Assembly (NCBI GenBank): GCA_965240325.2
Contig: OZ251238.1
Coordinates: 620,001 to 684,000 of the forward strand
Reading direction: 5' to 3'
Source of the DNA: Rebecca billardiae RCC1528
Taxonomy: Eukaryota > Protista > Haptophyta
DNA: 64,000 bases
The notes beneath the pieces were generated by a model. The model was given only the letters and a program-made list of their open reading frames with translations. It was not told the origin of the DNA and searched no databases. Shown piece by piece: positions 3,658-55,329 of the stretch (positions are counted from its first letter, which is position 1; each line of letters opens with the position of its first letter). Position numbers and translations under genes: made by a program.

Positions 3658-3843
3658 TGTTGGCCGGACAATGATTAATTTAATACGGTACGGTAAGACG
3701 ATCGACCAATTTACCAATAGGTGCAAATAGAAGTGATCAAGTTTTTAGTACATAGCAGCCACCAGCGCGCGCCGACGACCCAACGGCCCGAACGGCGGGC
3801 GCAGCATTGGGCTCCACACTGCGCGACTGACTGCGTCGCCACC

Positions 3844-5379
3844 ATGTCTCGACCGCCCTCGTCGCTCGGCGCGCTCCTAGCGCTCGCGGCGTGGGCTGTT
3901 GCCCCGGCGGCTTGCTTCGAGTTCGTCATGGGAGGCTGCGGTGGCCCCGGGTGCGCCATCCTCGACACGGGCGAGGCCAAGTGCTGGGGCAACGGCGGGA
4001 AAGGACGGCACGGCCACGGTGACATCGAGGACCGCGGCGACGACCCGGGCGAGATGGGCAACAACCTGCCGGCGCTCGATCTGGGCACGGGGCGCACGGT
4101 CGTAAAGATCTACTCGACGATGGAGGAGAGCGCCTGCGCGCTCCTCGACAACGGCGACTTCAAGTGCTGGGGCGAGGCGAATCACGGCCGACTCGGGACC
4201 GGCGACACCGTCGACCGAGGCGGCTTGCCGGGCACGATGGGCGACAAGCTGCCGGCCATCGAGCTGCCGTCCGGCACGGCCATCGTGATCGCGGCCGTCG
4301 GCGAACTCTCCCGCTGCCTCCTCCTCAACGACACCACCACTCGGTGCTTCGGCCACGCGCAGTGGCTCGGCCTCGGCCTGACGGGCTCAAGCACGAACAG
4401 CGTCGGCGACGACCCGGGCGAGATGGGCAACAACCTGACGGCCGTCGACTTCGGGGCGGGGCGGTACGCCATAAACCTCTTCGCCGGCTCGGACGCGTTC
4501 TGTGCCATCCTCGACGACCGGTCCCTCAAGTGCTTCGGCGACAACCCGGAAGGCAATCTCGGCTACGACGACCGCCACGACCGCGGCTCGGGCCCGGAAG
4601 ACGATTGCCCCGACTGCCATCTCATGGGCGACAAGCTCCCGGCCGTCGACCTGGGCAAAAACCGGACGGTGAAGACGATGGAGCTCTCGACGATGCACAC
4701 CTGCGCGATCCTCGACAACGACGCGCTCAAGTGCTGGGGGAAGGGCGATGACGGCGCGCTCGGCTACGAGGACACGCTCGATCGCGGCGACGGGCAGGAA
4801 GACGCGCTGCCCAACCTGATGGGCGACAAGCTGCCCGAGGTCAACTTGGGCACGGGCAGGAAGGCCGTCGCGGTGAGCCTCGCGGCGCCCTCCTCCGGCA
4901 CGACGTGCGTGCTGCGCGACGACGGCGCCTACGTGTGCTGGGGCGACAACCCCTACAGCCTGGTCATGGACGGTACGACCAACGACTACGGCGAGGTGGC
5001 GGGGACGATGGGCGACAACCTCAAGCCCATCTACCTGGGCAGGCACCCGTCCGACCCGAAGAACCGCAACCGGACGGTCTGCAAGTTCGAGATGGGCGAG
5101 GAGACGAACTGCCTGCTCCTTGACGACTGCACCTTCACGTGCATCGGCTATCATCCGCTCCTCGCCCAGGGCGACGGTGAGAGCCGCGGCGATGAGCCGG
5201 GCGAGCTCGGCGACGGGCTGCTGCCCATCGACCTGGGCGACGGCGCCCTCAGCAAGTGCCTGTCGGGTACGGAGACGTGCTTCCTGGACGCCTTCGCGAG
5301 CGCGCCGCCACCGCCGTCCCCGCCGAGCCCGCCGCCGGACCCGCCGAGCTCGCCGCCGCCGCCGGCGTCGCCGAGCCCA

Positions 5380-5413
<34 letters not shown>

Positions 5414-6145
5414 CGCTGTCGCCGCCGCTGTCGCCCCCACCGAGCCCGCCGTGGAGCCCACCACCGCCCAGCTCGCCGCCATCGCCCCCGACGCCCTTCC
5501 CGCCGCCCAGCCCGCCGCCGCCCCCGTCGCCGCCGCCAAGCCCGCCGCCGCCGCTCGAACCACTGCCGCCGCCGTCCCCGCCGCCGCCGCCGCCACCCAC
5601 GCCGCCGCCGAGCCCGCCGCCGTCCCCACCGCCACCGCCGCCCCCCACGCCGCCGCCGTCACCGCCGCCGCCACCGTCGCCGCCGCCGCCGAGCCCGCCG
5701 CCGCCGCCGTTGCCACCCCCCTCCCCGCCGCCGCCGCCGCCGTCGCCGCCGCCACAAGCCCTGTGCGGCGGCGGCTGCTTCCTTGCGGTGCGCGCCCGCC
5801 GCCGCCGCGCGTCGCCGCGCGCCCCACCGGGTCGCGAAGCCGGCCGCGTAGTGCCGCCCGCCGTTTCATCCCGCGGCCCGTAAGCCGCGCGTGCGCTGCC
5901 GCGCGCTTGGTCGCCCAGCGCCCGCGGCGATGTGCGGCTGTGGCCGAGATGCTACGCGCGCATATGCGCCGTGAGCCGTCCGCCACGCGCGTGTCGTGTG
6001 TGCTGTGCTGTCTCACAAGGACCGCCCCTGCCCCGTGTCGACCGCGCGGGCCGCGTGCGCGCGCGCGCGCCTGCAGCTCATGGCCACCACGCTGTACAGG
6101 CTCACCGTCGGGAACGTGGCGTGCGGCGTCTTCGGCGTGTGCTAA
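3844..6145 (+). CDS. Secreted RCC1/BLIP-II-repeat protein with extensin-like Ser-Pro stalk
   Basis: Signal peptide MSRPPSSLGALLALAAWAVAPAAC. Repeated CAILD..KCWG..G.LG..DRGD..GEMG.NLPA.DLG blades, then an SP2-6 tract. Predicted intron 5788-6076 and last exon LMATTLYRLTVGNVACGVFGVC*. Confidence 0.8.
5303..5753 (+). repeat. Pro/Ser low-complexity coding repeat (CCG-rich)
   Basis: Encodes (S/T/L)P2-6 units. Confidence 0.9.
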
Positions 6146-8528: not shown

Positions 8529-8746
8529 GTGTCAGAGCGCGGCTCCCGAGCGCGTGCCGCTCCGAGCGCGGGGCCGGCCGTCTTGCTGCAATGGCCGCCT
8601 CGATGAGGTGCGGCAACGCGCCCCTCACCTGCCTGCGCCGGTCTGTTTTGAATTGCGGTGTCTTTGTGCAGTCGTGTTGGATGGCGTCAATCACGCCTTA
8701 ACCAAGTGTGCACGTTAAAACATATATATATATATAGTGAACTGTA
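8529..8746 (+). repeat. Interspersed repeat family A, copy 1
   Basis: Highly similar to 45062-45261. The 3' end (taaccaagtgtgcacgttaaaaca(ta)n gt.aactgta) also occurs at 29675-29718. Confidence 0.85.
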
Positions 8747-9148
8747 TAACTGGGTACTACGGAGTACTATGATGATATGCTATAGCTACGGTGACGGTCA
8801 TCATCTCACATCTGTTATTATCTTCCGGGACGACGAGAGTGAGGCTGCTGATGATGATTATAGCCTGCGCTGACTTCGGCGGAGTGACACCGACGCTTCA
8901 GCAGACGGTGATGACGGCTGACGTACTGTGCGGGGCCGCGCCACGGGGCCGGGGCGGCCCGGCGCCGCATCAATCATGAGCGCGATGACGACTAGTCGTC
9001 GCCATGATATCAGCAGCATCATTATCACATCACGTGTGGCGGCGGGCCCCGGTCACGACTCCGACGATGATGATTGATGATGATGAGCACGCCCTACTCA
9101 GTCATAGTGATCTGGTGCTCCATCCCGGCCCCGCTCCCCGTTGACAGG

Positions 9149-9460
9149 GGGGCAGGGCTGCGGGTGGCGCACTGCCTGACCTGATGGTCGGAAGGCGCGG
9201 ACGCATTCTATGCTATGCTAGTGTCTGCTGCAGTCTGCACTCTGAGCCTGATGACGCTTGCCCCGGTTCGGCACTGAGTGAGTCACTGACCGGACCACCT
9301 CGGTTAAATAAATAAATAAATAATAAATAAATATATATTATAATACATTTAACGACGTGGCAGCATCGGACAAGCGTCAGGCTCAGAGTGCAACAGACAC
9401 ATAGAATGCGTCCGCGCCTTCCGACCAGGTCAGACAGTGCGCCACCCGCAGCCCTGCCCC
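9149..9460. mobile_element. MITE-like hairpin (inverted arms around an AT-rich (TAAA)n loop)
   Basis: 9149-9260 is the reverse complement of 9371-9460, with small insertions in the left arm. Confidence 0.7.
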
Positions 9461-9515
9461 GTAATATATATATTATATTATTACTAACACGCCGTACTAT
9501 TAACTATATATATAT

Positions 9516-11365
9516 GACCGCGTTCCGCGGTCCTTCCGTAGAACCAACGTAGTTAGAGGCCCGCGGTGCAACCTCCGTCGGCTGCTGATGTCGATCAGTC
9601 TGACTGACATGGCGGGCCGAGGACTGTCGCCGCGGGCCGCGCGGCGGGTGAAGCGCGGCCGCCGGGGCGGCGCGCGCGCGCAGGGCGAGAGGCGCCGCGC
9701 GGCGCGGGCCGGCGCGGGCGGGCGTGCGGGCGCACCTGCTTGAGGTGCTCGCGCTGCGCCATGCGCTCGACGACGGGCCGCTGGTCGCTCAGCCGGCGCG
9801 CCTCGTGCCGGCAGAGCGAGAGCGCGCGCCACTGCCAGCGGGCACTGCGTCTGCTGCCCCGGCCCGTGCGCCGCTGCGCAGCCGCGCACCGATCGCCAGA
9901 GGCGAGACCGAGCGGAGCTCGGAGTGGAACGAGGCGAGCGGCGCGTCGCGCCTGCCGCCGCGCGTGCGCGCCTGCTCCACCGCGCCGCGCCGTGCTCGCC
10001 CGCCGCCTCCTCGTCCGCCACGTCGCGGCCTCGACTAGCTAGCCACGGCGGCGGCCAGCCGGCGCGGCAGGCCGTGACAATCGGCAGCCCGTGGCCGTGC
10101 GTGCTCGCCGAGTTGCTGCTGCTGCACCTCCGGCGCGGTCGACGACCGAGTTGAGGAGGGGCTCGCGCTCGGCGTCGAGGAGCGAGCTCGCGAGCTCGAG
10201 CTCGCCCTTCATTCAGCCGCGCTAGCTCCGGGCGCATCCGGCTCATCTCCGCTGCGGCGTGCCGTCGCGGCGCGCTCCCAATCCTCATTCCTCAAGCGAC
10301 GAGCTCGCGTAGTGCTCCGGACTCGGCTCGCCCTTGCGCGCTCCTCCTCGAGCGACGAACGCGCCCGCGGGTAGGTTGTTGGGCGCGCGCCGACTCGGCG
10401 TGACTCGGCCACGCGGCCCGGCAAGACGACAGACAGACAGACCGGTGCCGGTGGGCGCGCTCGTTGAGAGCGGAGCGCGAGGGCCGGGCGAGACGGAGTA
10501 GACGCGGGGCCTGCGAGGCGACAGGCGCGCTCGGGGAGAGCAGAGTGCGAGGGCGAGAGGCAGCGGCCGGCCGGCCCCCGCCACCACCTCGCGCACCGCG
10601 GCGTATTCTGCGGCGGCACGCGCACGCCGTCACTGCCGCACGCCGCCCCCCGGTCCGAGTCAAGCACTCCACGCGTCGCGGCAGGCCCCTTGCCCCGCGT
10701 CTATTTTACTCCGTCTCACGACTCCGCGCCGGTACGCGCCGGCCCGAGCATTTCGTCTGCGTGCTGTATATATATATATTCGTCACGAACTAGTACCCGG
10801 TATGGGGGTACGGAGTGATCATCTTTTGTCTGCAGTGCGCCCTCTAGTGGCTTCCGCGGGAACCAGTGAGTCCATTTACGACCATGCACGTTCAACCGTA
10901 TCGTCGGAAGATTGAACGGGAACCCCCTTGGTAGAATACCCTGCTACTGTAGGACCCCCGTGCACATGCACTTTTAAAAAAACACGTCCGGCCCTGGGTC
11001 CGGTTGGTCCCGGGCTGGCGACCAAGTTTTGTTCCGTAGTATATATATATATATGAATGTTTACAACAAATCGCAGCTAGATATTCGTTCACTAGTACCC
11101 AGATATACTGACAAAGGCGCGTCCAGGCTCACGTCCGTCCGTAGATACGGAATTGGAGCGGGCGCGGCTATTTCGTCAATGCGCCTGGCTAATGCAGAGC
11201 AATGGGCCAAGGTACCCCTGGAAAAAGCGAAAACTCACCCTCCGACAGCCCTCAAAATCGTCCCCCGTCCCCTCATTCTTTTAGATCAAAAGATCTTTTT
11301 GACAACGTAGTGAGGGCCCCCGGCGGGGCTCCACGCTACGCGCTCCGCCCTGCACCGCGGGCCAT
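9516..11365 (-). mobile_element. Non-autonomous Helentron/Helitron2-like element, copy 1
   Basis: Asymmetric 13-bp inverted repeats GGCCCGCGGTGCA (9558-9570 and 11351-11363), terminal hairpin GACCGCG-ttc-CGCGGTC (9516-9532), and homology along its length to 56470-58035. Confidence 0.7.
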
Positions 11366-11558
11366 TAGTAGTAGTATAGTAGTATTAGTATTATATTATT
11401 ATATATATATAATATATATATATATAATACTATTATTATTATATTACGGCCACCTGCGTCCTGCTGCTTCATCTGGCCTCGTCGCGTCGTCGTGTCTAAC
11501 GTCAACGTGTCACTCGTGACTCGTCCTCGACGTAACGACGACGTACTCGATCGCGTCA

Positions 11559-14500
11559 TCACTGCTGAGCAGCTAACGCCTCGAACGCCAGCTGCACCGA
11601 GCGGCCGAGCCGCTCCGCCTCGACCTCCAGCCAGGGCGTGCCGTCCACGCCGCCCTCCATGTCCACAGCCATCTCACGGCCGGCGGCATCCAGTTCCACG
11701 CCCGGCGCAGGCTCGCCGCGCGCGCGCTTGAACCCCGCCGCCCGCCCGCCCCTCGGCACGCCGCCTCCGTCCTCCGCGGCCGCGGCGAGCGGCGGCGCGT
11801 CGGGGAGCAGCACGAGCTCCGCGCTGGCGGCGCCGCGCCCCGCGCCCGCGCGGCAGCACAGCCGGTGCACGGCGTGGCCGAGCACCTCCGCGGCCGACGC
11901 GAGCTCTGCGCCGCCGCCGCCCTGCGAGGGCGCACCAGGCGGCACGGCGCGGTGCGCGGCTCCGCGCGGCGCGGGGACGAGCGTGATGGCGAGGAGCGCG
12001 CGCGCGGGGCGCGCGGCGCCGCCGCCATCGTGCGCCGGCAGCTGGAGCGCCAGTGTCTCGGTCGGAGCGCGCGCGCCGCCCGAGCCCGCCGCCACGGGCG
12101 CACGCTCGAGCGCGAGAGAGATGGCGTGGCGGAGCTCCGCCGGAGCGTGTGCAAACGCAGAGTAGGGCGCGCCCACCGTGTGCGGCGCGGCGCGCTGCTC
12201 GGCGGCTGTGTCCGCCGTCGCGCCCAGCCCGGCCGAGCTGATCGCCGCCGCCTCGCTCGCGCGCTGCAGCCGCTGCCACGCCTGTAGCCGCTCGAGTGGC
12301 GGCGCGGCCGCGCCCACCGGCCTCAGGCCGAGGTGCGCGGCGCGCGCGCTCAGCTGGCCCAGTGCCAGCCGCCGTTCGAACGCTGCCCACTCGGCGACGA
12401 CGGCGGCGCGCGCGGCCGGCGTGCTCAGGTCGCCCGCGGCCGCGAGCGCGGCGAGCAGCGGCTCGGCGGGCTCGGCGGCGGCCCCCTCCGCCGTCGAGGC
12501 CGGGCAGCCGCTGCCCGCGGCCGCGGAGAGGCGCACGCTCCACGCGCCGTCGACGGGCGAGAGTGCGCAGAGCGCGCAGCCGCCGCCGAGCAGGCACACG
12601 CGCACGCAGCGCGCGGCAGGCGTGGGCTGCGCGCCGTCCTCGGCGCCTGGCTCGCCTGCCTCGGCGGCGGCGGGCGCGGCCGGCAGCTGCCGCGGCGGCT
12701 GCGCGCTCGCCGCCGCCGCGCCGACATCGACGCCGCCGTCGCCGCCGCCGCCGTCGCCGTCAACGGTGACGAGGCTGCAGCGCGCGGCGGCGCCCGCGGC
12801 GCAGAGCGCGCGGCACAGTCGGCTGAGGAGCAGCCTGGTGTGCGCGCGCACCGCCGAGCTGAGCAGCTGCTCCGCATCCACGGCCGCCATGCTGAGCTGC
12901 AGCGCGGCGCGCGCAGAGGGCGGCTCAGCGCCGCCACCGCTCACGCGCGCTCGCTGCCGCCCGCCCAGCCCATCGGCGGACGCGGGCGCAAGCGTCGGCC
13001 ACACGTCCGCCTCCGCCTCTGGCTCGACCGCGGGCGAGAGCGTGGCGACGAGGAACTGCGCGGCGTGCGCGCTGCTCAGCGGCGCGGGCGCCAGCGCCGC
13101 GCCCGCGCACGCCAAGCCGCGCGCGCTCGCGCCCGCGCACGCCGCGCGCGCCGCGGCCGCGTCGTCCAGCGCGGCGGCGCTAAGTGCGTGCACGCTCGCA
13201 CAGTAGCGCTTGCCGGGCGCGGGCGCGCGGCCCGGCCAGTAGGAGAGGGTGACGCCCGCGGTGCTGCCGAGCGCCGAGCCGTCGGCCGAGCCTGCCCCGC
13301 CGCCGCGCGGCGCGAGCCCCGCCGAGCCCGCCGCGCCGCGCGTGAGCGGCGGCGGCTCGTGCAGCCCCAGCCGCGCGCGCCACGCGGTCGTCAGCTTGAG
13401 CCGAGCCGCCTGCGCGCGCAGCGCCTCGACTGCGTGCCTCGCGCAGAAGGCGGAGGCGAGCTGGTCGCCGAGGAGCAGCGGCTCGAAGGGCGGCGTGGCG
13501 GCGGTGCGCGGCCTCGGCTCGGCGTCCGCCACGCCGCCGCCCGCCGCCGCGCCCCCCGCGTCACCACCGATCGCTGCAGCGCCCGCCCCCGCGGCGCGCT
13601 GGGAGGCCAACGCGCCGGCGGCTCCGGCCTCCGAGGCGGCGGCGGCCGCGGCGCGCCGGCTGCCGAGCTCGATCGCGGCGGCGAGCTGCGAGCCGAGCGC
13701 GGCCTGCTCGCGCGCGTAGCTGCCCAGCTCGAGCACGCTCACCCGCAGCCGCAGCTCGAAGTGCCGCACGCGCCACTTGGCGCTGGGCAGCGCGCACGTC
13801 GGGAAGAGGACAAGTGAGTATAATCCGGGTACCTCACACACGACAAGCCCGCCGCACGCGCGCACGGCCGCGCCCGCGGGCGCGCGCAGCCGGAGCGCGT
13901 GGACGCGCGCGGCGCGGAGGAAGCGCGCGTCGTGCGGCGCGCCGCCCGGCCCCGCCTCCGCGCGCGCGCTCGCCGCCTTCGCCTTCGCCGCCGCCGCCGC
14001 CGCGTCGGGCGGCCATTCTGTCCCCAGGCCGAGAGGCAGCTCTGAGTAACTGCCGCCGCCAAGCACGCTCAGCGCGGTGCGCACGTCGAGCGGCGCGGCC
14101 GCGTCGTACGGCGGCTCGAGCGCGGCGGAGGCGAGGTGCGCGAGCCGGCCCAGCGCGCTCAGCGCCGTCGCGTGCCCGTTCCGCGCCCCGCGCAGCGCCT
14201 CCGCCGCGCCGCGCGGCGCGTGCAGCGCGCGCGCCGCCGCGTGCCTCGGCGCAAACTCTGCGAGCGCAAGCAGACGGCACAGCAGCGCGCGCGCGTGGGC
14301 GAGGGGCTGCACGGCGGTGGCGGCGCGCGCGTCGCGGCGGAGCATCGACGCCTCCGGCGCGCCGCTCGCCAGCCCCGCCGCCGCGTGGTGCAGCTGCGCC
14401 ACCACGCCCACGGCGATCGCGCGGCCGACAGCGCCGAGTGTGAGGGGCGCGCGCGCGCTGCCGCCGCCCTCGGCCGGGTGCGCGCGCTGGGCCACGCCGC

Positions 14501-15225
14501 GCTCCTCGTCGGCGAGCGTGCGGCACGCGGGGGGCAGCGCGAGGCCGAGCTCGCGCGAGAGCGCGGTGCGGTAGTTCTGCGCCCGCGGAGTGCGCGCGCG
14601 CGGGCGCACGCAGGGTGCGCGCGAGCGTGAGCGCGGACAAGGGCGCCGGCGCGCGCGCGGCGCGAGCGCGCGCGCGCGGCGTGCGCACATCGAGCATGGC
14701 CGTCCGCGCGCCGAGCTGGGCGTTCTCGCGCATGACGTCGGTGAACGAGACGAACGTGCCTCCGCCGTCCTCCGCGAGGTGCAGCTTCAGCGGATTGCTG
14801 CCGGCATCCACCTTGCTGCGCGCGCACGCGCACGCGCGCGCCTGCTCAGCGCCGCGCGAGAGGTGGCGCGCAGCGCGTGCTCGGGGTGCGCGCGCGCACT
14901 CGACGGCCTCGCGCGGTATCTCGAGGTCGTACGCGTGGAGAACTGTCACCATGGTCTCCAGCTGCGCGTGGAAGCAGTAGCTGCACGTGCGCGCGCGCGC
15001 GCGCGCGCACGCCGAGCCTCCACGTTCGTCAGCGCGCGCCAACACCCGCTGCGCGCGCGCGCGCGCGCCGTGCGGCGCGGAGCCGCACATTCCGTCCAGG
15101 AGGGAGTTCAGGTCGAGGCTCGCGTGCGCCCCGGCGATCCTGACGAGCTCGGCCGCGCTGTCGATCGTCGTGCGCACAGCATCCACGCACTCCTGCGCGG
15201 CGAGCTCGTCCGGCGTGGCTGCCAT
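11559..15225 (-). CDS. MED10-MED14: Mediator subunit fusion: N-terminal MED10-like domain plus MED14-like protein
   Basis: Predicted exons 15225-15089, 14980-14900, 14815-14689 and 14576-11559, with GT-AG introns, all in frame. MED10-like: DLEIPREAVDKVDAGSNP...RENAQLGARTAMLDNYRTALSRELGLALP. MED14-like: HARALLCRLLALAEFA and PYD...VRTALSVLGGGSYSELP. Confidence 0.75.
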
Positions 15226-15320: not shown

Positions 15321-17678
15321 ATGGGCGTGCGCGCGGCTGCCGCGGCGCTGCTGCTGCGCGCGGCGGCGGTGCACGCGGCGGGCGGCGCGGACAGTGACGC
15401 CTCCGTGCACGTCGTCTTCTGCGCCGAGTGCAAGGCGGACATGGACTGGAAGTCCGCCGGCATGTTCCACTCATGGCACACGTCCGGGATGCCTGGCCGA
15501 ATCACGCGGCTGCTCGCGTGCTCCGAGGAGCAGCTCGCGACGTACCCCAAGGCGGCGCTGGAGATGGGCCCGACGTTCGTCCACCGCAACTACCGCACGC
15601 ACCCGCGCGTGCCCAAGGACTTCTCCGGCTCGTACAACAAGGCGGCGTCCATCATGGAGTTCATGGCGCACGTCGACTTTTCGGAGCAGTTCGTGCTGTA
15701 CGTGGACGCGGACATGCTGATCCGCCGGCCGCTGGTGCCGTCGGTGCTCGGCGTGCAGAAGGGCACCGTCGTCTCCGAGCACGTGATGTACCTCGAGAAC
15801 GGCGTCAACGGCGGCCTGATCAAGCAGTTCTCGCCGGAGGCGAAGGGCGTGCCCGCGCCGGTCGGCTGGTACCACTTCTTCCACCGGGACGACATCGCCA
15901 AGATCGCGCCGCTGTGGCTGCACTACTGCGAGCGCATGCGCACCGAGCCGGAGCTGTACTGGAAGCAGTACGGCAAGGTGCGCCACCGCCCCGCGCCGCC
16001 ACGACCGACCACCCTTGCCGCCACCGCTGCGGCTGCGGCTCGAGCCCGCTGAGCGCTCCGCTGAGCAGCGCCCCGCGTCGCCCCGCGCCGCGCTCGCGCC
16101 CACGCGCCGTGCACCGCGCGTCGCGGGCAGATCGACCACGACATCCCGACGGGCGACGCGTTCGTGCGGCAGGGCGGCATCCCGTGGATCTCCGAGATGT
16201 ACGGGTACGTGATCGCCGCGGCCGAGGTCGGCGTCTCGCACGTGCTGACGCACGGCGTCGTCAAGTACGCGCAGTGGCCAGAGGACCACAAGGACAAGCC
16301 GGATTGGATCCCGGATCCGTATATCATCCACAACGGGATCGGGTGCCACGTGAACGACGAGGCGGGGAAGCGCGTGTACGGCTTCGAGAAGAGCGGCGTG
16401 GCCGTCGACCCCGCGCGCGGCTGCGAGCTCGACGATTCGAACGGCGAGACCGAGGAGCCGCCCAAGCGCCGGCTGATGCCGCGCACGCGGTACGCGCCGC
16501 GCCCGCCTCCCTTCCGCCTGGGTGAGCCGGGGCGGAGCAAGCCGCGGCCGTTCAACGAGCAGCTGTGCATCTGGGCGACCAACATGGTGAACAACGCGCT
16601 GTGCGGGCTGTACCGCGTGCAGTGCGGCCGGCCGGCCGAGGAGTGCCCGGTCGAGTATGCGAACGACGGCCAGCCGACGACCGGCGGCGAGCTGGGCTGC
16701 GAGGACAAGGAGGGCGCGCAGTGCGCCGCGTGGGCGGCCGCGGGCGAGTGCGGTAAGAACCAAGGCTTCATGCGCGAGGCGTGCCGCCGCTCGTGCCACA
16801 TGTGCGCGCACGTGCCGCCGCTGGTGCCGCACCCGGAGCACACGTTCAACGGCACGCTCGGCGCGCACCTCATCCACAAGGGGATGACGGCGGCGCAGGC
16901 GGCGATTGGCGGGCGCACCGCGCGCGACGCGCACGCGACGGGCGAGGGCGGCGACGCCGCGGGCGGCGCGCCCAAGTCTTCGGAGGATGGCGGCGGCAGC
17001 GCGCCGGCCGGCGAGAGCGCGCCTGCGGCGACGCCGGCCGCGCTGACCACCCCCGAGCCCACGCCCACGCCAGCGCCCGCCGCCGCGGAGCAGGCGGCGG
17101 CCGCCGCCCAGCCGTCGGCGGCGGGCGCGGCGGCGGGCGCGGCTGGCAGCACGGCCGGCGGCGCCCGCGCGGAAACGGCGGCCATGCCGGCTGGGTCGGC
17201 GGGTGGCGCGCCTGCGGCGCACGCGCGCGACAGCGAGGTGGGTCACGGCCTCGCCGCCGCCGAGGCCGCGCGCGACGGCGTGGCGCCGCTGCCGAGCCAG
17301 GCGGCGGCGCGCATGCCGCGCACGCCCCCGCGCCGCGCCGCAGAGCCAGGCGCGGGCGAGTGGGCGGCGATGCGCGGCGGGGGCGGGGCCAGGCGCGACG
17401 CGGAGACCAAGCCGCCCTTCCGCCGCCCGCCGCTCCGGCGCGAGGGCGCGCGCGTGCTGCCGGACGGCGAGGACGACAGCGGCGACGCCGAGCGCGGCTC
17501 GGCCATCGAGGAGGAGATGGCGGCGGCGACGCGCATCCAGCGGCAGATGCTCGCCATGTGGGGCGTGATCACGCTCTGCCTCGTGTGCTGCATCGGCGGG
17601 CGCGCCATGCAGGTGCGCGAGCGCACGCGCGCGCGCGAACGGAAGCGGCGCATGCTCGGCCCAAAGCACGCCGTGTGA
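15321..17678 (+). CDS. Peptidyl-serine alpha-galactosyltransferase/HPAT-family glycosyltransferase with ShKT domain and C-terminal TM
   Basis: Signal peptide. Motifs HVVFCAEC..DW, GRITRLLAC, YNKA, VDADM (DxD) and WISEMYGY. ShKT pattern CEDK..CAAWAAAGEC..N..FM...CRRSC..C. Intron 15978-16130. Confidence 0.85.
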
Positions 17679-18954: not shown

Positions 18955-19484
18955 GACTTTGCTCTGCCGTCGCTCCGTCTGCACACACACGCACACGCAC
19001 TCGTCTGGTCTTTGCCACTCGTCATTCATGGGCGCCGTTGTCCTGGGCTGCAGCACCCTGCTGTGTTCCCGCACCTGCTGAGACAGGTCGGTCGAGCGGA
19101 TCCCGATGCAAGCCATCCAACTACCCGCCCCACCTGGCTGCGTCGGACGCGGGCAGCCCGCACCAGCCGCGGCCCCGTGCCCGCGCACTGGCCTGCGAGC
19201 GCGGCTCGACGTCGCCCTGCACACAAGTCACGCCGCCGCACACACTGTCAAGTCAACCGTCATCGCCCTACCACTGTCTAAACAATATATATACTATATA
19301 TATATATTAAACAGATCGTCATCTAGACGAAATAGCTGATGGTGCGGCCGCACCAGCTAGCTGGTGGCTGCTGGTGCCGGCACTCGGCGCTGCACCGTGC
19401 ACGGCGCCGTCCGTGACGAGTGCGGCTGCGCGGTCCGGCGGCGCGGCCAAGCCGGAGCCGGCAGCGGGCTCAGCCTCCGTGCTA

Positions 19485-21382: not shown

Positions 21383-22357
21383 TGAGCAGCCTGATAGTAT
21401 TCAATAAACGGATGATCGACACGGTAATGAAAATGATGAGCAGAGATCAGCCTGCTATATTATTACGACTAGACTTAGGTGTCGTCTCACTTACATCGTC
21501 AGGTCGTATTTAATATATATAAACTAATATGACTGCTCGGTGCCGCGCCGCTGATGACTCAGTGACTTGAGTCAGTGCCGTAGCACATGGCACTATCGGA
21601 GCATCAGCCAATACCGCTCATATTCACTAAGCTATAGCTGCCGCCTGCGCTAACATCGTCGAGTAGTCATCAGTGCGCCGTGCGGCCCGTCCTGCGGACG
21701 TGTCGTCGTCAACCGGACCTGGCAGTCCCAGTCGGTCGTCCGATGAGACCGTGATCCGTCGCGATTGCGGCGGGCGCGCTATTAGTTATCGTATATCAAG
21801 GCCCTTGCGTATATATTCCTCAGACGTCAATCGTTCATTCAATCGAATTAATCGATATATGCTGATCTGAGCTGATTTTATTTTATTTGATGATCGATAT
21901 ATATTAACGACGTGGTATGCAACGGGCAGGCGTCAGAGTCAGCAAGCTGTAGCAGCAGATCGAGCAGCAGAGACAAACACCAGGATCAGCGCTCCTCGCC
22001 GTCGTCCCCCCCCCCCTCGTAGTCGCCCATCACTCCATCGCCGAGCGGAAGCTCGACGCACCGTCTGGCGTCGACGCGCGCGCGCCACCGCGGTGGTCGC
22101 GGTGCCACGCGTCGTCAGCCGTCGATATATATGCATGATGCGCTGCGCTACTCATCGGGTTATTCATCAATAACGTTCCATCGATATCCGCCAACCGCCA
22201 AGCCCAAGGCTGTGCGCCCATGCTGTGATGCTGCCCCGCGACGACAATCTCAGCCCTGCTGCTGATGCTCCGGAGTCCGGACATGATGCAGCGCGCGCGC
22301 GCTGTCGCTACGGACACGGTGCCGCCATCCCTGGATGATGGCACCGCTCACAGACTC

Positions 22358-24957
22358 TCACAGGCTGGCGAGGAAGTCGGTGACGTTGATGGTGCGCGAG
22401 CCTGCGTCGCCCGCGTGGAATTTGCGCATCAGCGTGATGAGCGCCTGGTCTTGCAACTCGAGAGATGCCGCCTTGAGCGCGCGCTGGAAGGCGTCGTAGG
22501 AGACGAAGCCGCTCTCGCCGCCCTCCTCCTTGGCGAGGCTGCGCGCGAGCGCGGCGCGCAGGCGGGCGGATCGGCGGGGCGGACACGCGCGTGAGCGCTG
22601 CTTGGCCCAACGGCGCGGCGCACGCAACCCTCGCGCGCGCGCGTGCGCGCGCACATGTCCGCGAGCTGCTCCTTCTTGCCGTCGCGCACCGAGGCGCCGA
22701 GCTGCTGCAGCACGTAGCCCGCGTCGCTCATCGGGTGCAGGTGGCGCTCCTCCTCCATCAGCGCGAGCGTGTACTCGTCCGCCTGGTACAGGATGAACTT
22801 GTGCGTGTAAAACTCGACCTGCGTTGTGCGCGCCGAGGGGGAGAGAGGGTGTGTGTGGGCGGAGTGTGTGTGTGCGGGGCACGCGGGGAGCGCAGAGCGA
22901 GCGCAGAGCGGGAGAGTGGGGCGACGGCGTGGGCGCGTGTGTGCGCTCCGGTGGGCGGTGGGTGGCGGTGAAAGCGGCGGCGTGCGCGGGCCCGATCCGC
23001 TGTCGCGCGCGGCTGTCCCTCCTCCGCCCGCCCGCCCGCCCCGGGCCCAGCCCACACGCCGTCCACACGCGGCACGCGCCCGGCTCGGAAAGCGCGCCCA
23101 CACCGCTCGCGCTCGCGCTCGCGCTCGCTCGCCCCGCCGCCCTGCACACACGCACACGCACACGCACGCACACGCACACACGCACACGCACACACGCACA
23201 CACGCACACACGCACACACGCACACACGCACACACGCACACACGCACACACGCACACACGCACACACGCACACACGCACACACGCACACACGCACACACG
23301 CACACACGCACACACGCACACACGCACACACGCACACACGCACACACGCACACACGCACACACGCACACACGCACACACGCACACACGCACACACGCACA
23401 CACGCACACACGCACCTGCGCGCCGACGAAGAAGTCCCCCTGGAGGTACCACGAACCGTCCGGCTTCCGCAGCCGCGAGCGCTCGAGGAACTTGCCGCCG
23501 ACGATGCCCGAGTTGCGCGCGGGCGGCTCGAAGACCGAGACCGTGTCGTCGGCCAGGTGGTACTTGATCACGAACACGCGGTCGCCGTCCTCCACCGCCT
23601 CCGAGACCAGCCGCCCCATGAAGCGGAAGACCTTTTGGTCGTACTCCATCATGCGCGTGTGGTTCTTCTTGGGCACCTTGGGCGTGAGGTAGAGGAAGGA
23701 GCCGAGCGAGTCCTCCTCCGTGCCGGGGTGGCCCTGGTAGTGCGGCGGGATCTCCACCTGCGGGCGCACCACCGTGTGGTCGAACTGCATCGGGATGTCC
23801 TCGAAGTCGAGCCCGTACACGCGCCTGTAGTAGTCGCGCGTGTACGCGTCGCAGCCGTGGATGAGAAAGGTGATGCCCTGCACGCGCACCTCCTTGCCCA
23901 CCGCAAAGTCGGTCTCGGAGAAGTAGTGCAGCGAGGCGGGGTCGACCTTGCCCGAGCGGTCGATCAGCTGCGTCGTGTGCGTCGTCGGCGCGTCGGTGCG
24001 CACCAGCGTCTCGATGTCCTTCGCCAGCTTCCCCTTCTTGAGGAAGGACGGGAACGGGTCCCGCCCAGAGTTGGCGCGCTTCACCTCGAGGATCTCCACC
24101 TCGTCGTCCGCGAGGTAGTAGTGGAGGATGAAGGGGCGGAGCTCGCCGTACATGCTCGTGCGGTCGTCCCACGCCAGGTAGAACCGGAGCACCTGCCGGT
24201 CGTGCCGCAGGAACTTGCCCAGCTTGTCCCCGCCGAGCTGCGCGGTCGAGGCGCCCATCTTGGCCTCCATGTAGCGCATCAGGTCGTCCTCAGACGGCCG
24301 CGGGTGGAAGTACTTCTGGTTGCGGATGGTCTGCTCGCGGAGCTGCTCGCGCGTCTGGTTGTACGGGTCGATTGGCGTGTCCTCCGGCGGCCCCTCCTCG
24401 CGCAGCCCGAGCTTCGCCACGAACTCGCGCGTGAACGTGTCGGCGTCCGTGATGTGAAACGTGCGGCCGTAGAGAGTGATGTCCTTGCCGACGCCCAGGT
24501 CGTCCATCGAGACGAACGAGCCGTCGGGCTTCTCGATGCGGTGGCGGCGGATGAAGACGGCGCCCTTGCCCTCGCCCTGCGGGATCCCCGAGTTCTCGAT
24601 CTTCGGCTCGGACACCTGCATCGTGCCGTCCAGCAGGTAGAAGAAGATGATGCAGCGGCGCACGCGCCACGTCTCGTCGCGGCTCTCGACGACCGCCTCC
24701 TTGAAGTAGCACTCGTAGCGGAGCACCTTGCCGTCGAAGACGACGTGGTCGGGCGCGTCGGTGATGCCGAGCTTCTTCGCCAGCGTCTTCGACAGCTGCT
24801 CCTCCACCGGCTTCTTCACGTCGTTCGGGTCGCCGACTTGCATCACGCCCGCGCGCATGCCGAGCGACGTCTTCCGCCGGAAGTCGGTCTGGCTGAAGTC
24901 GCGCACGGTGTTGCCCGGCAGGTTGGGCAGCCCGGGGATGTGGCGTGACGGAGCCAT
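22358..24957 (-). CDS. EFHC1: EFHC1/Rib72-like axonemal protein (3 DM10 domains plus EF-hand-like tail)
   Basis: FDGKVLRYECYFKEAVVES, HDRQVLRFY, YYLADDEVEI and YHLADDTVSVFEP...NSGIVGGKFL. Introns 22819-23415 and ~22539-22654. Confidence 0.92.
23143..23415. repeat. Intronic (GCACACAC)n tandem repeat
   Basis: ~30 near-perfect 8-mers abutting the EFHC1 intron donor. Confidence 0.95.
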
Positions 24958-25339
24958 CGCGAAACACCGGCGCGCCCGCGTGCGCGAGCTCTCTCTCTCT
25001 CTCCCTGCGCGTGCCGCGTGCGCGCAGCTTGCGTCCACGCCCACAAGCGATGGTGAGCCCGAAACGTACCTTGGCCGTGGCGAAACGACCGATTTCGCAC
25101 GCGCAGTTGGCAGCCATCGTGCGGCCCGCAATAACAGCAAGCGGCCTTTGATGCTCACCGGAGCAACAGCAGTGGCAGCCCAAGCCGTGCAGGTCTGCAC
25201 CGCCTGCTTCCCAAGATTCGGAGCTGCGCCAAGCCGGCGCTGCGCCTGCCAGCCTCTTTGTCTCACGCCCAGCGGGCTGGCGCGCGGTCGGCACGGGGTG
25301 GAGGGCGCGGGCGGGCCCCGCGACGAGCCCCAAGCGAGC

Positions 25340-28300
25340 ATGAGCACCGACGACGCCGCCGCCGTGCGCATCCAGGCCGCCGCGCGCGGCCGGCACTCGC
25401 GGCGCTACGCCGACCAGATGAACGAGCAGGCGCTGCAGCAGTGGATCTCGTGGCACCTGGCGTGCAACCAGTTCGCCGAGGCGCGCGAGCTCGGCTGGGA
25501 GGGCGACGAGCAGGCCGTCAAGGCGCGCAACCGCCTCCGCGCGCGCGCCGCGCTGCGCGTCGCCGTGCGCATGCAGGCCGTCGTGCGCAGGCGGCAGGCG
25601 CGCGCGCTCGTCGACGCGCGGCGCGACGAGCGCTCCGTCGAGCTGCAGGGCGTGCGCGAGATGGCGCGCGTGCGCGAGCAGCTCGAGCGCCCGCCAGCGC
25701 AGCTCGTCGCGCGCTTCGCCGACGGCACGCTCGACCTCGCGCGCTTCTGCGCGCCCATCCGCGCGCGCGCGCTCCGCACCGCCGCGGCGTGCGAGCAGCT
25801 TGAGCGCGCGGCGCGCTCGGCCGCGGGCGAGCGCGTGCCCGGCGCGGCGGCGCGCGGCGGCGGCGGCGAGGCGGCGGCGGGGCTGTCCGAGCTCGAGACC
25901 AACGAGCGCATCGACGCGCTGCACCACGCGGGCGCGCAGGCGCGCTGGCTCGCCGAGGCCGCGTCTGAAGACGCGGCCGAGCTCTGGCGACTGCTTCTCA
26001 CGACTCGGCGCCAGGACGCGGGCACGCGCGCGGGCGCGTGCGAGCTGCACATGCGCGCGGCGCTGCGCGTGCACACGGGGCGGGCGAGCTGGCGCTGGTT
26101 CACGCTGCGCCGCGCGCTCGTCGCGCACGGCTACCTCCGCCCGCCCGCCGCGCCCGCGATGCCCGCGGCGCACGGCGGCGGCGGCTCCGGCTCCGGCGCG
26201 GGCGCGGGCGCGGGCGCGGGCGCCGCCCCTGGGCCCGGCGGGCTGGGTACGCCGAGGGGCGTGTCGGCGCTGGCCGCGCGGCCGCGTGGGATGGGCACGC
26301 CGTCGCGCACGCCCGCGGCGCGCCGCGCGGCCGCCGCCGCCACGCTCGGCGGCACGCGCGCCGCCGCCGACTCGGAGCCGGCCAACTGGCGAGCAGTCAG
26401 GGACGACCTCAGGGCAAGGCTGCACCTGGGGGCGCTGCGGGAAGTGGCGACGGCGGCGGCGGCGCGCTCGGCGGAGGGCGGCGCGGAGGGCGGCGGCGCG
26501 GCGGGCGGCGCGGCGCGCGAGCCGACGCCGCGCGCGCAGCTCGCGCGGCTCGGCGCGCTGCTGCACGCGTGCGGCGGCGACGACGCCATCGCTGAGGCTC
26601 TCTCAGTGCACAGTCAGGCGCCCGCGCCGCCGCCGACCGCCGCGGCCGCGGCCGGCGGCGGCGGCGGTTATGGCGGCGGCGGTGGGAGCGGCGGCGGGGG
26701 CGAGGGCGAGGGGATGCAGCGCGGCGGGCCGGGCGCGGTGCGCAGGCAGCCCAGCGGCGGCACGGCGCTCGGCGGACACGCGCTCCAGCGCGCGCGCCGC
26801 ATCGCGGAGCTGCACGCAACGCGCGCAGAGAGCTGGCGCGCGCGCGTCGCGGTCGGGCTCGCGCGCTGGTGCCGCGCGCTGGACGACGCGCACTCGCAGC
26901 TGCTGCGGCTGCAGGGCGCGCTGAAGGGCGGGCGCGCGGGCGGCGTGCTCGCGGGCAGCGTGGTGCGCAGCGCGCGCGCCTCCGACGCGCGCGCGCTGCC
27001 CGCGCCGCCCGCGCGCGCCGCTACCGTCGTCGGCATCGCTCGGCCGTCGGCACTGGCTCTGCGGCGCGGCTCGGCGCCGGCGGGCGGCGCGCCGGGCGGC
27101 GGCGGGTATGGCGGCCGCGACGGCGGCGAGTACGCCGACGAGGGCAGCGCCGTGAGCGAGCGCCGGCTCAGCGGCAGCAGCGAGCGCAGCGCCGGCGGCC
27201 GCGCGCCCACGCGCACCCTTGAGGAGCTGCAGCTGCAGCAGCAGCGGCTGGAGGCGTCGGCGCTGCGCGCGGCCGCGGGGCTTCGGCTCGGCGGCGCCGG
27301 CGGGGTCAAGCCGCTCAGCCTCGCCATCGCCGCGTCCGCGCGCAGCAAGCCGGGCTCGAGCGCGCCCTCGGTCAGCGCGGCGTCGGCGCCGCCGAGCGCC
27401 AGCTACTTCTACGCCTCACACCGCGGCCCCGGCGACGGCCTGCCTGGCGCGCATGAGGGCGCGGGCGGCGGCGCGGGCGGCGGCGGCACGGCCCTCATCG
27501 CGCTCGGGGGGTCGGACGGTGGCGCGCATGGCTGGCCGCTCAGCTCGGGGCCGTCCTCCTCCGGCAGCCACGCTGACGGCTGGGACGCGGAGGGCGGCGT
27601 GTACACGCACGAGCCGAGCGTCGCCGCAGTGTCCTACGCCGCCGCGGCGCGCTGGCGTGCGACGAGTACGCGCGCCGCGCAGCGCTCGTGGCGCCGGCCG
27701 GGCGGCGCGGCGGTCGCGCGCGCTCTGTCCTTGCTCGTGGATGAAGGGGCGTCGCTGGAGGCGAAGCTGGAGGCGGTGGCGGAGGTGGAGGCGGCGGAGG
27801 ACGACGCGCAGACGGACGGCGTGCTGCGCGCGCTCGCGCCGCCGCCCACGCCACCGCGCGCTGTGCCGCTGCACGCGGCCGGCTGGGTGGCAAGCGGCAA
27901 GGGCGGCGGCGGCAAGGGCGGCGGCGGCGCGGCCCGCGCCGTTGTGCGCGCGGGCGGTGAGGCCGGCACGCTCGTCCCGTACCAGTACGGCCGTGCGCCG
28001 CCGCCCGCGCCGATGCCGCACGCGCAGGCGCTGCAGTGGGCGCACGAGGCGCTCGGCTGTGCACAGGACACGCGCCGCGCCCTTGAGGTGCGCACCGCGC
28101 GCGCGCTGCGCGGGCGGCGCGCCGCGACGGCCGCCCGTGCGCTCACCGCCCACGCTCGCCCGCGCGCGCGCACCGCGCCCGCGCCGCCGCTGCCCGCGCA
28201 GGCCGAGCACGCGGCGCGCGCGCGGCTGTCGATGCGCGCCGACGGGCTCGAAGCGGCCGCGGGCGCAATGCACGTGGCTAGCCTGGAGGGCGCCATCGCA

Positions 28301-38440: not shown

Positions 38441-39195
38441 GCGCGTGGCAGGGCGCGCGTGGAGGGCGTATTGGTGACGGGCGCGCGCTCGCCCCCGCAC
38501 ACCCGTGGCCCGTGCTTGTCTGACCAGCTGGCAGCTGGCAGCTCACTCACGTGGTCGTGCGCAGATAGCGCGGCGCAGGCTTGGCTGGGATCTTAGGATC
38601 TCACTGGCCGGTATGTGCCAAGCCGAACCGTCGTCGTATGCGCAGCCACATGCGGCCGCCTGCACACAGCGCCAGCCGCTACGGCCATGTCTACATCGGC
38701 ATCACTCCTCATGTCACGACCACGCGCGCCCCGGCTTGGACTTTGGCCTTGGGCCGCTCCGCGTCCGCGGCACGGCCACGGGCGTCCGGTCGCGTCAGCG
38801 TGCGGCGTGCGCAGGCCGTGTGAGTAAGTCACGCGGACCGCGAATCGTCCGCGGGCAGGGCAGCATTCTGACGGGCTGCCGATGCCGACTCAAGTGCATG
38901 CCAAGAGGACAGGTCCGCGGTGACGACCGGCGTCGGGCGTTGCCAATGCCAGACCCAGTCGATGGACGAGCGATGACGATATTGTCGCGCGTCTTAGTCT
39001 TATAGACTTATAATACTATAGCAGTCTTTGTACATTAATATTACTGTCTGTAGATCGACTCGCCTGCCTGAGCTGTGTGCGTCTCTTATTCTTAGTAAAC
39101 TGTAAAGTAGTCTTGTAACACAGTACTTGTAACACAAGGCTCACGGTGGCAGGTTGCCGCGCAAACGAGGCACGCTTGCAGCCTTGCACGGCAGC

Positions 39196-55049: not shown

Positions 55050-55329
55050 TGAACGCACCCGGCGGCTTGGATTGGCGCTGGGCTTGCTCAGACTCGACCG
55101 CGAGGAACGCTCGCCCGGGCGCCACGCGCGATGCTCGCGAGTCATTGGGTGGGGTCGTAGTAATTCTATGATTTAAACACGTCGAAAATGACTATATACA
55201 GCATTTTCAATTTCGGCCGCCATTTGGCATTTGCCCGCCACTAATTCCGTCATTTTGACGGATTTCATTATTATTTTCGCAAGTGACTCCCGCGCGCACG
55301 CGTGGCCGCGCCGGGACCTCCACCGCACG

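Follow-up and report, generated by a model that had tools for sequence, protein, structure and literature searches.

The stretch analysed here, hereafter the window, comprises 64,000 nucleotides of the haptophyte Rebecca billardiae RCC1528 (assembly GCA_965240325.2, contig OZ251238.1, forward-strand positions 620,001 to 684,000; all positions below are counted from its first letter). A preliminary description of this DNA, made from the letters alone, had proposed that its minus strand encodes in one polypeptide MED10 and MED14, two subunits of the Mediator complex; elsewhere among eukaryotes, Med10 and the N-terminal part of Med14 sit on separate chains, which pack together with Med19 in the Mediator hook. 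Following up this proposal, we find that the locus probably encodes, as a predicted gene product, a fusion of these two interacting subunits.

From 15225 down to 11559 the minus strand holds an ATG followed by four coding segments, with three GT..AG introns between them (Table 1). Splicing of these introns, the positions and in-frame joining of which agree with those originally proposed, generates a single frame of 3363 nt and 1120 residues, whose sole stop is the TGA at 11559-11561, and the peptide strings quoted in the preliminary description were all recovered from the spliced product. The first exon supplies an N-terminal helix and the beginning of the Med10 match, and methionines occur in the complete product at residues 1, 56, 101, 113, 193, 678, 1084 and 1088.

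The division into exons and introns is also visible in the guanine-cytosine (GC) content, which amounts to 69% for the 64-kb window and reaches 83-87% in places at this locus, with (GC)n runs. In exons 1-3 the GC fractions at codon positions 1/2/3 are 0.70/0.42/0.90, and in the introns, which are mostly (GC)n, all three positions lie near 0.83. All three introns begin with GTGCG and end with GCAG or GTGCAG, and GC at third codon positions (GC3) remains at 0.90-0.95 along the entire 3.36-kb frame, which is intact. With codon periodicity seen in the exons and not in the introns, and with the Med10 match described below emerging only once the introns are removed, the division is beyond chance. 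Since the length of intron 3 is not divisible by three, its splicing is required to bring exon 3 into the frame of exon 4. Introns 1 and 2, on the other hand, have lengths that are multiples of three and hold no in-frame stop, so that their retention would not truncate the protein but add 36 (intron 1) or 28 (intron 2) residues rich in Arg and Ala to Med10.

Table 1. Parts of the predicted MED10-MED14 gene and AT-rich islets of the window, in window coordinates
Feature	Position	Strand	Description
Exon 1	15089..15225	-	ATG 15225-15223; codons 1-45 and two bases of codon 46
Intron 1	14981..15088	-	108 nt, GTGCGG...GTGCAG, (GC)n-rich
Exon 2	14900..14980	-	81 nt; middle of the Med10 domain, ends within the conserved P.E.V motif
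Intron 2	14816..14899	-	84 nt, GTGCGC...GCGCAG; interrupts the most conserved Med10 motif
Exon 3	14689..14815	-	127 nt; D.G.NP motif and third Med10 helix
Intron 3	14577..14688	-	112 nt, GTGCGC...GGCGCAG; (GC)n-rich; length not a multiple of 3
Exon 4	11559..14576	-	3018 nt including the TGA stop; last Med10 helix, linker and entire Med14 part
Med10 domain (PF09748)	14532..15114	-	residues 38-130, split by three introns; last 15 residues are the first exon 4 codons
Linker	14451..14531	-	27 codons, residues 131-157; no stop, no Met, GC3 = 1.0
Med14 N-terminal domain	13806..14450	-	residues about 158-372; LL.RLLAL, PPYD..R.AL.VL..G.Y..LP, G..VC.V.G.Y
Rest of Med14-like chain	11562..13805	-	residues 373-1120; Ala/Gly-rich; without Pfam repeat-module match
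AT-rich islets	8714-8778, 9277-9377, 9453-9526, 11023-11099, 11351-11469		<30% GC over 60 nt
AT-rich islets	19260-19345, 21827-21914, 38990-39060, 55154-55214		<30% GC over 60 nt

Two further features of the frame were noted. An out-of-frame ATG at 14690-14688 of the minus strand straddles the border of exon 3 and intron 3 and lies in the frame of exon 4, thereby opening a 1043-aa open reading frame (ORF, 11559-14690) across the unspliced intron 3. A prokaryote-style ORF caller would take this for a single-exon gene and miss the Med10 exons, and a look-up of its exact product gave no record. Moreover, a less GC-rich stretch at 13790-13840 was considered as a hidden intron and rejected, as it aligns with the conserved G..VC.V.G.Y of the relatives.

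Med10 and Med14 domains and the segment between them

To characterize the N-terminal part, residues 1-140 of the spliced product were scanned against the whole Pfam library at expectation values (E) up to 10. The sole family reported was PF09748, Med10, with 25.1 bits (gathering score 23.3) and an E of 1.8e-5, bearing out the MED10 assignment of the preliminary description. The match aligns residues 38-130 with positions 26-111 of the profile, covering 86 of its 119 positions, and as it extends to residue 130 the C-terminal helix is present and the domain complete. The hallmark I-P-.-E-.-V...D-.-G-.-N-P and a C-terminal helix ending in L-P can be read directly in the sequence. When the query was cut at the end of exon 3 (residues 1-115), the score dropped to 15.4 bits (E 0.018); the last Med10 helix, worth about 10 bits, is thus provided by the first 15 codons of exon 4, congruent with the earlier claim that the two domains meet in one uninterrupted exon. 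The central observation is that, on the predicted splicing, Med10 ends within the very exon that encodes Med14, in the same frame, and not at an exon boundary preceding this big exon. Scans of single exons, or of exons 1-3 translated together with introns 1 and 2, returned no Pfam match at E up to 10, negatives that carry little weight since intron 2 splits the core Med10 motif.

The second part was identified through its relatives. PF08638, Med14, is the sole Pfam family on the exon 4 product, with residues 59-193 of the latter on profile positions 16-135. An exhaustive HMMER search with exon 4 residues 1-305 against 1.84 billion representative proteins yielded three matches at E <= 1e-3 (1e-6, 1e-4 and 3e-4), all of them clear Med14 N-terminal domains (Pfam E 7.9e-21 to 1.6e-27, 75-97 bits). 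A hidden Markov model built locally from these three matched the spliced protein at residues 172-372 with 50 bits, and in the four-way alignment the motifs LL.RLL, PPYD..R.AL.V...G.Y..LP and G..VC.V.G.Y are common to all. Likewise, in the protein atlas the best named matches were Med14 clusters in ten of ten cases, the top one scoring 0.93 with 201 of 256 features shared. When the C-terminal 700 residues were submitted without the N-terminal domain, full-length Med14 clusters again came first with a score of 0.85, which constitutes a weak lead. The MED14 claim of the preliminary description therefore stood by way of Med14 relatives and atlas features, and by the Pfam Med14 profile itself it remained below threshold.

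Other searches with the Med14 part were less productive. The exon 4 product gave no Pfam match to Med14 repeat modules (RM2, RM3), and sequence searches of the PDB with the Med14 part returned chance matches only. Word-indexed protein searches, using exon 4 as a whole or its residues 40-310, recovered no match, not even the query itself. The alanine content of the chain is 27-29%, and we attribute the empty result to Ala-rich words swamping the candidate list; proteins of this genome also seem to be absent from the collection. At the level of sequence homology, we regard the N-terminal domain as established Med14, and the same identity as probable for the chain as a whole. The preliminary description had called this Med14 short; yeast Med14 is close in length to the Med14 part here, of roughly 960 residues, and the term is hence a relative one.

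The Med10 match ends at residue 130 (nt 14532), and homology to Med14 sets in at about residue 158 (nt 14450). This leaves 81 nt between them, too short a distance to accommodate a stop, 3' and 5' untranslated regions, a promoter and a start codon. Beyond Met113 the chain has no methionine before residue 193, which falls within the Med14 domain, as expected from the earlier statement that no Met separates the two parts. With no ATG at the point where relatives start their Med14, translation must come from upstream. Furthermore, the AT-rich (TA)n islets that appear to mark the intergenic DNA of the window are missing between the Med10 and Med14 domains. The two domains are identified, stand in the order Med10-Med14, and are continuous in one exon and one frame. 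We consider it likely that this predicted four-exon nuclear gene specifies a single chain of 1120 residues, comprising MED10 (about residues 38-130), a 27-residue linker and a full MED14 (about residues 158-1120).

Unfused relatives and alternative readings

Several results weigh against such a fusion. On the Med10 side, the match exceeds the Pfam cut-off by 1.8 bits only, with the Pfam profile as the single source of the assignment, and a phmmer single-sequence search of PDB chains found no Med10, returning chance matches only. On the Med14 side, PF08638 remains below its gathering score (15.1 versus 25.6 bits, E 0.016, with the exon 4 product), and an AlphaFold2 model of exon 4 residues 1-305, computed from a four-sequence alignment, reached a predicted local distance difference test (pLDDT) value of 39.5 and lends no structural support. 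In addition, neither the protein collections nor a metagenome scan contained an orthologue with the same fusion, or a close relative of either part, and in six of six contigs with the nearest detectable relatives Med14 is unfused and starts at its own ATG.

These relatives, at 32-39% identity, are short marine metagenome contigs, about four of them distinct, that derive from GC-rich marine eukaryotes (L001-L004 being TARA contigs, and L005 and L006 JGI contigs). Their Med14 ATG is located 5-12 residues before the start of the conserved domain, and in L001 an in-frame stop immediately precedes it. L005 and L006, the Med14 of which reach 103-109 bits on the Pfam profile, show codon periodicity beginning at this ATG and none upstream, and the 2.9 kb upstream hold nothing Med10-like by Pfam or tblastn. 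Given these separate start codons, the fusion would be specific to the lineage studied here rather than general. L005 (2064 nt) and L006:2205-4272 are 97% identical to each other, with 74% GC and a GC3 of about 0.98, and in L006 an indel upstream of the ATG fuses two frames into a misleading open frame of 1401 codons.

Among the alternatives to the fusion, the one that survives best, yet is improbable, is a Med14-only product, made alone or beside the fusion from an internal transcription start or by retention of intron 3, and starting at Met113 or at the ATG at 14690. Med14 would then carry the last Med10 helix only, and the upstream Med10 exons would form a separate or non-functional unit. 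In its favor, the ATG at 14690 gives an uninterrupted 1043-aa ORF via intron 3 into exon 4, and Met113, at the end of exon 3, is in frame. Intron 3 does not however behave as coding DNA in the frame of that ATG, with GC fractions of 0.80/0.90/0.83 and no codon periodicity, the frame turning coding-like after the intron, and it is (GC)n-rich in the manner of introns 1 and 2. Left unspliced, it would also send the Med10 frame on without a nearby stop, out of frame to 13834, and deprive Med10 of the helix worth 10 bits, leaving a stand-alone Med10 product without a proper end.

It is less probable still, and in our view unlikely, that the first 130 residues represent a helical extension of Med14 peculiar to this lineage and resembling Med10 by chance, with a normal MED10 located elsewhere in the genome. 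The narrow Pfam margin and the PDB search by phmmer speak in its favor, and so does a word-indexed search of a collection of 5.8 billion proteins with the spliced N-terminus, where no relative was found. The protein atlas, furthermore, placed the intron-retained version of the N-terminus with unrelated coiled coils; these clusters, of dynein, were rejected as an artefact of the 64 intron-encoded residues in the query, which is hence uninformative. Against chance resemblance stand the E of 1.8e-5 obtained with the whole Pfam library and no competing family, the coverage of 86 of 119 profile positions, and a score that follows correct splicing, which is not expected from a random likeness between helices. 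Finally, the fused partner is exactly the subunit that Med10 contacts.

Least likely, and very doubtful, is an assembly or sequencing error that joined two neighboring genes through a lost stop or an indel, or a decaying, unexpressed pseudogene, for although the (GC)n runs and the high GC content are error-prone, the 81 nt between the matches, without a Med14 ATG, leave no room for two complete genes to have been joined by a single error, and the intact 3.36-kb frame with its uniform GC3 displays no sign of decay.

Returning to the fusion, a wider claim can be attached to it, which we hold tentatively and with slightly less than even confidence, namely that this lineage lacks any separate MED10 and builds the hook of Mediator from a single covalent Med10-Med14 chain, at a fixed 1:1 ratio and with co-translational assembly of the backbone. 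Within the 64-kb window, no second Med10- or Med14-like sequence was found.

Neighboring genes and AT-rich islets

A divergent gene at 15321-17675 of the plus strand starts 95 bp from the ATG of the MED10-MED14 gene, a spacing that suggests a shared bidirectional promoter. Weak matches to hydroxyproline O-arabinosyltransferase (HPAT) are found in two of its open frames, and it contains a ShK domain (E 8e-7). Further away, an RCC1-repeat protein is encoded at 3721-5880 of the plus strand, and an EFHC-like, flagellar-associated protein carrying three DM10 domains (E 2e-86) at 22432-25404 of the minus strand. No transcription-related genes were found near the locus among the neighbors within the window.

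The (TA)n-like islets listed in Table 1 fall below 30% GC over 60 nt in a window of 69% GC, and look like markers of intergenic or 3'-end DNA. One of them, at 11351-11469, is situated about 100 nt past the stop codon of the MED10-MED14 gene.

A probable covalent hook module and its known counterparts

The hook of the Mediator middle module comprises Med10, the Med14 N-terminus, Med19, and parts of Med4, Med7 and Med21 (PMC6130968; bioRxiv 10.1101/2020.10.05.326918), in agreement with the placement of MED10 and the MED14 N-terminus in the preliminary description. A direct Med10-Med14 interaction has been detected for the yeast proteins by yeast two-hybrid, and a weaker contact between the two reduces the interaction with TFIIB (PMC5066617). 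Both also belong to a set of roughly ten Mediator subunits that yeast requires for viability and that have been conserved throughout eukaryotes (PMC2475620). What is new here is the covalent link, as both domains and their contact are well known. The suggestion that the fusion is undescribed held in so far as no natural Med10-Med14 fusion came up in full-text literature searches, nor any paper on Mediator in Emiliania or other haptophytes, which is not proof of novelty; the Mediator survey of Bourbon 2008 does not mention fusions (PMC2475620).

As for its origin, an ancestral MED10 gene may have been positioned directly 5' of MED14, and the fusion would then have arisen when its stop codon and the DNA between the two genes were lost. 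In the resulting protein, the Med10 part could fold back via the 27-residue linker onto the adjacent Med14 N-terminal helices, establishing the same hook contact within one chain and with one fewer free subunit. Such a covalent link would fix two essential subunits at 1:1, and the hook could assemble already during synthesis of the chain.

If true, the fusion represents independent evolutionary evidence for an obligatory 1:1 contact between Med10 and Med14, and indicates that the C-terminus of Med10 and the N-terminus of Med14 tolerate a tether of about 27 residues without loss of function. As a natural single-chain hook, the protein would be a candidate for structural or reconstitution work, and it would provide information on Mediator in haptophytes, a group in which this complex has hardly been described. 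The accepted view of how Mediator works is unchanged.

Compared with MED10/Nut2 (PF09748), the middle-module and hook subunit of Mediator, the protein described here shares a profile match above the gathering score. It is however not a free-standing small protein of roughly 130-220 residues, its C-terminus instead continuing into Med14, and it is divergent, with an insertion of roughly seven residues after the NP motif. Analogously, the second part has a homologous N-terminal domain followed by a long chain in common with MED14/Rgr1 (PF08638), the backbone of Mediator, and differs from it in lacking its own start codon and in the roughly 157 residues that precede the domain.

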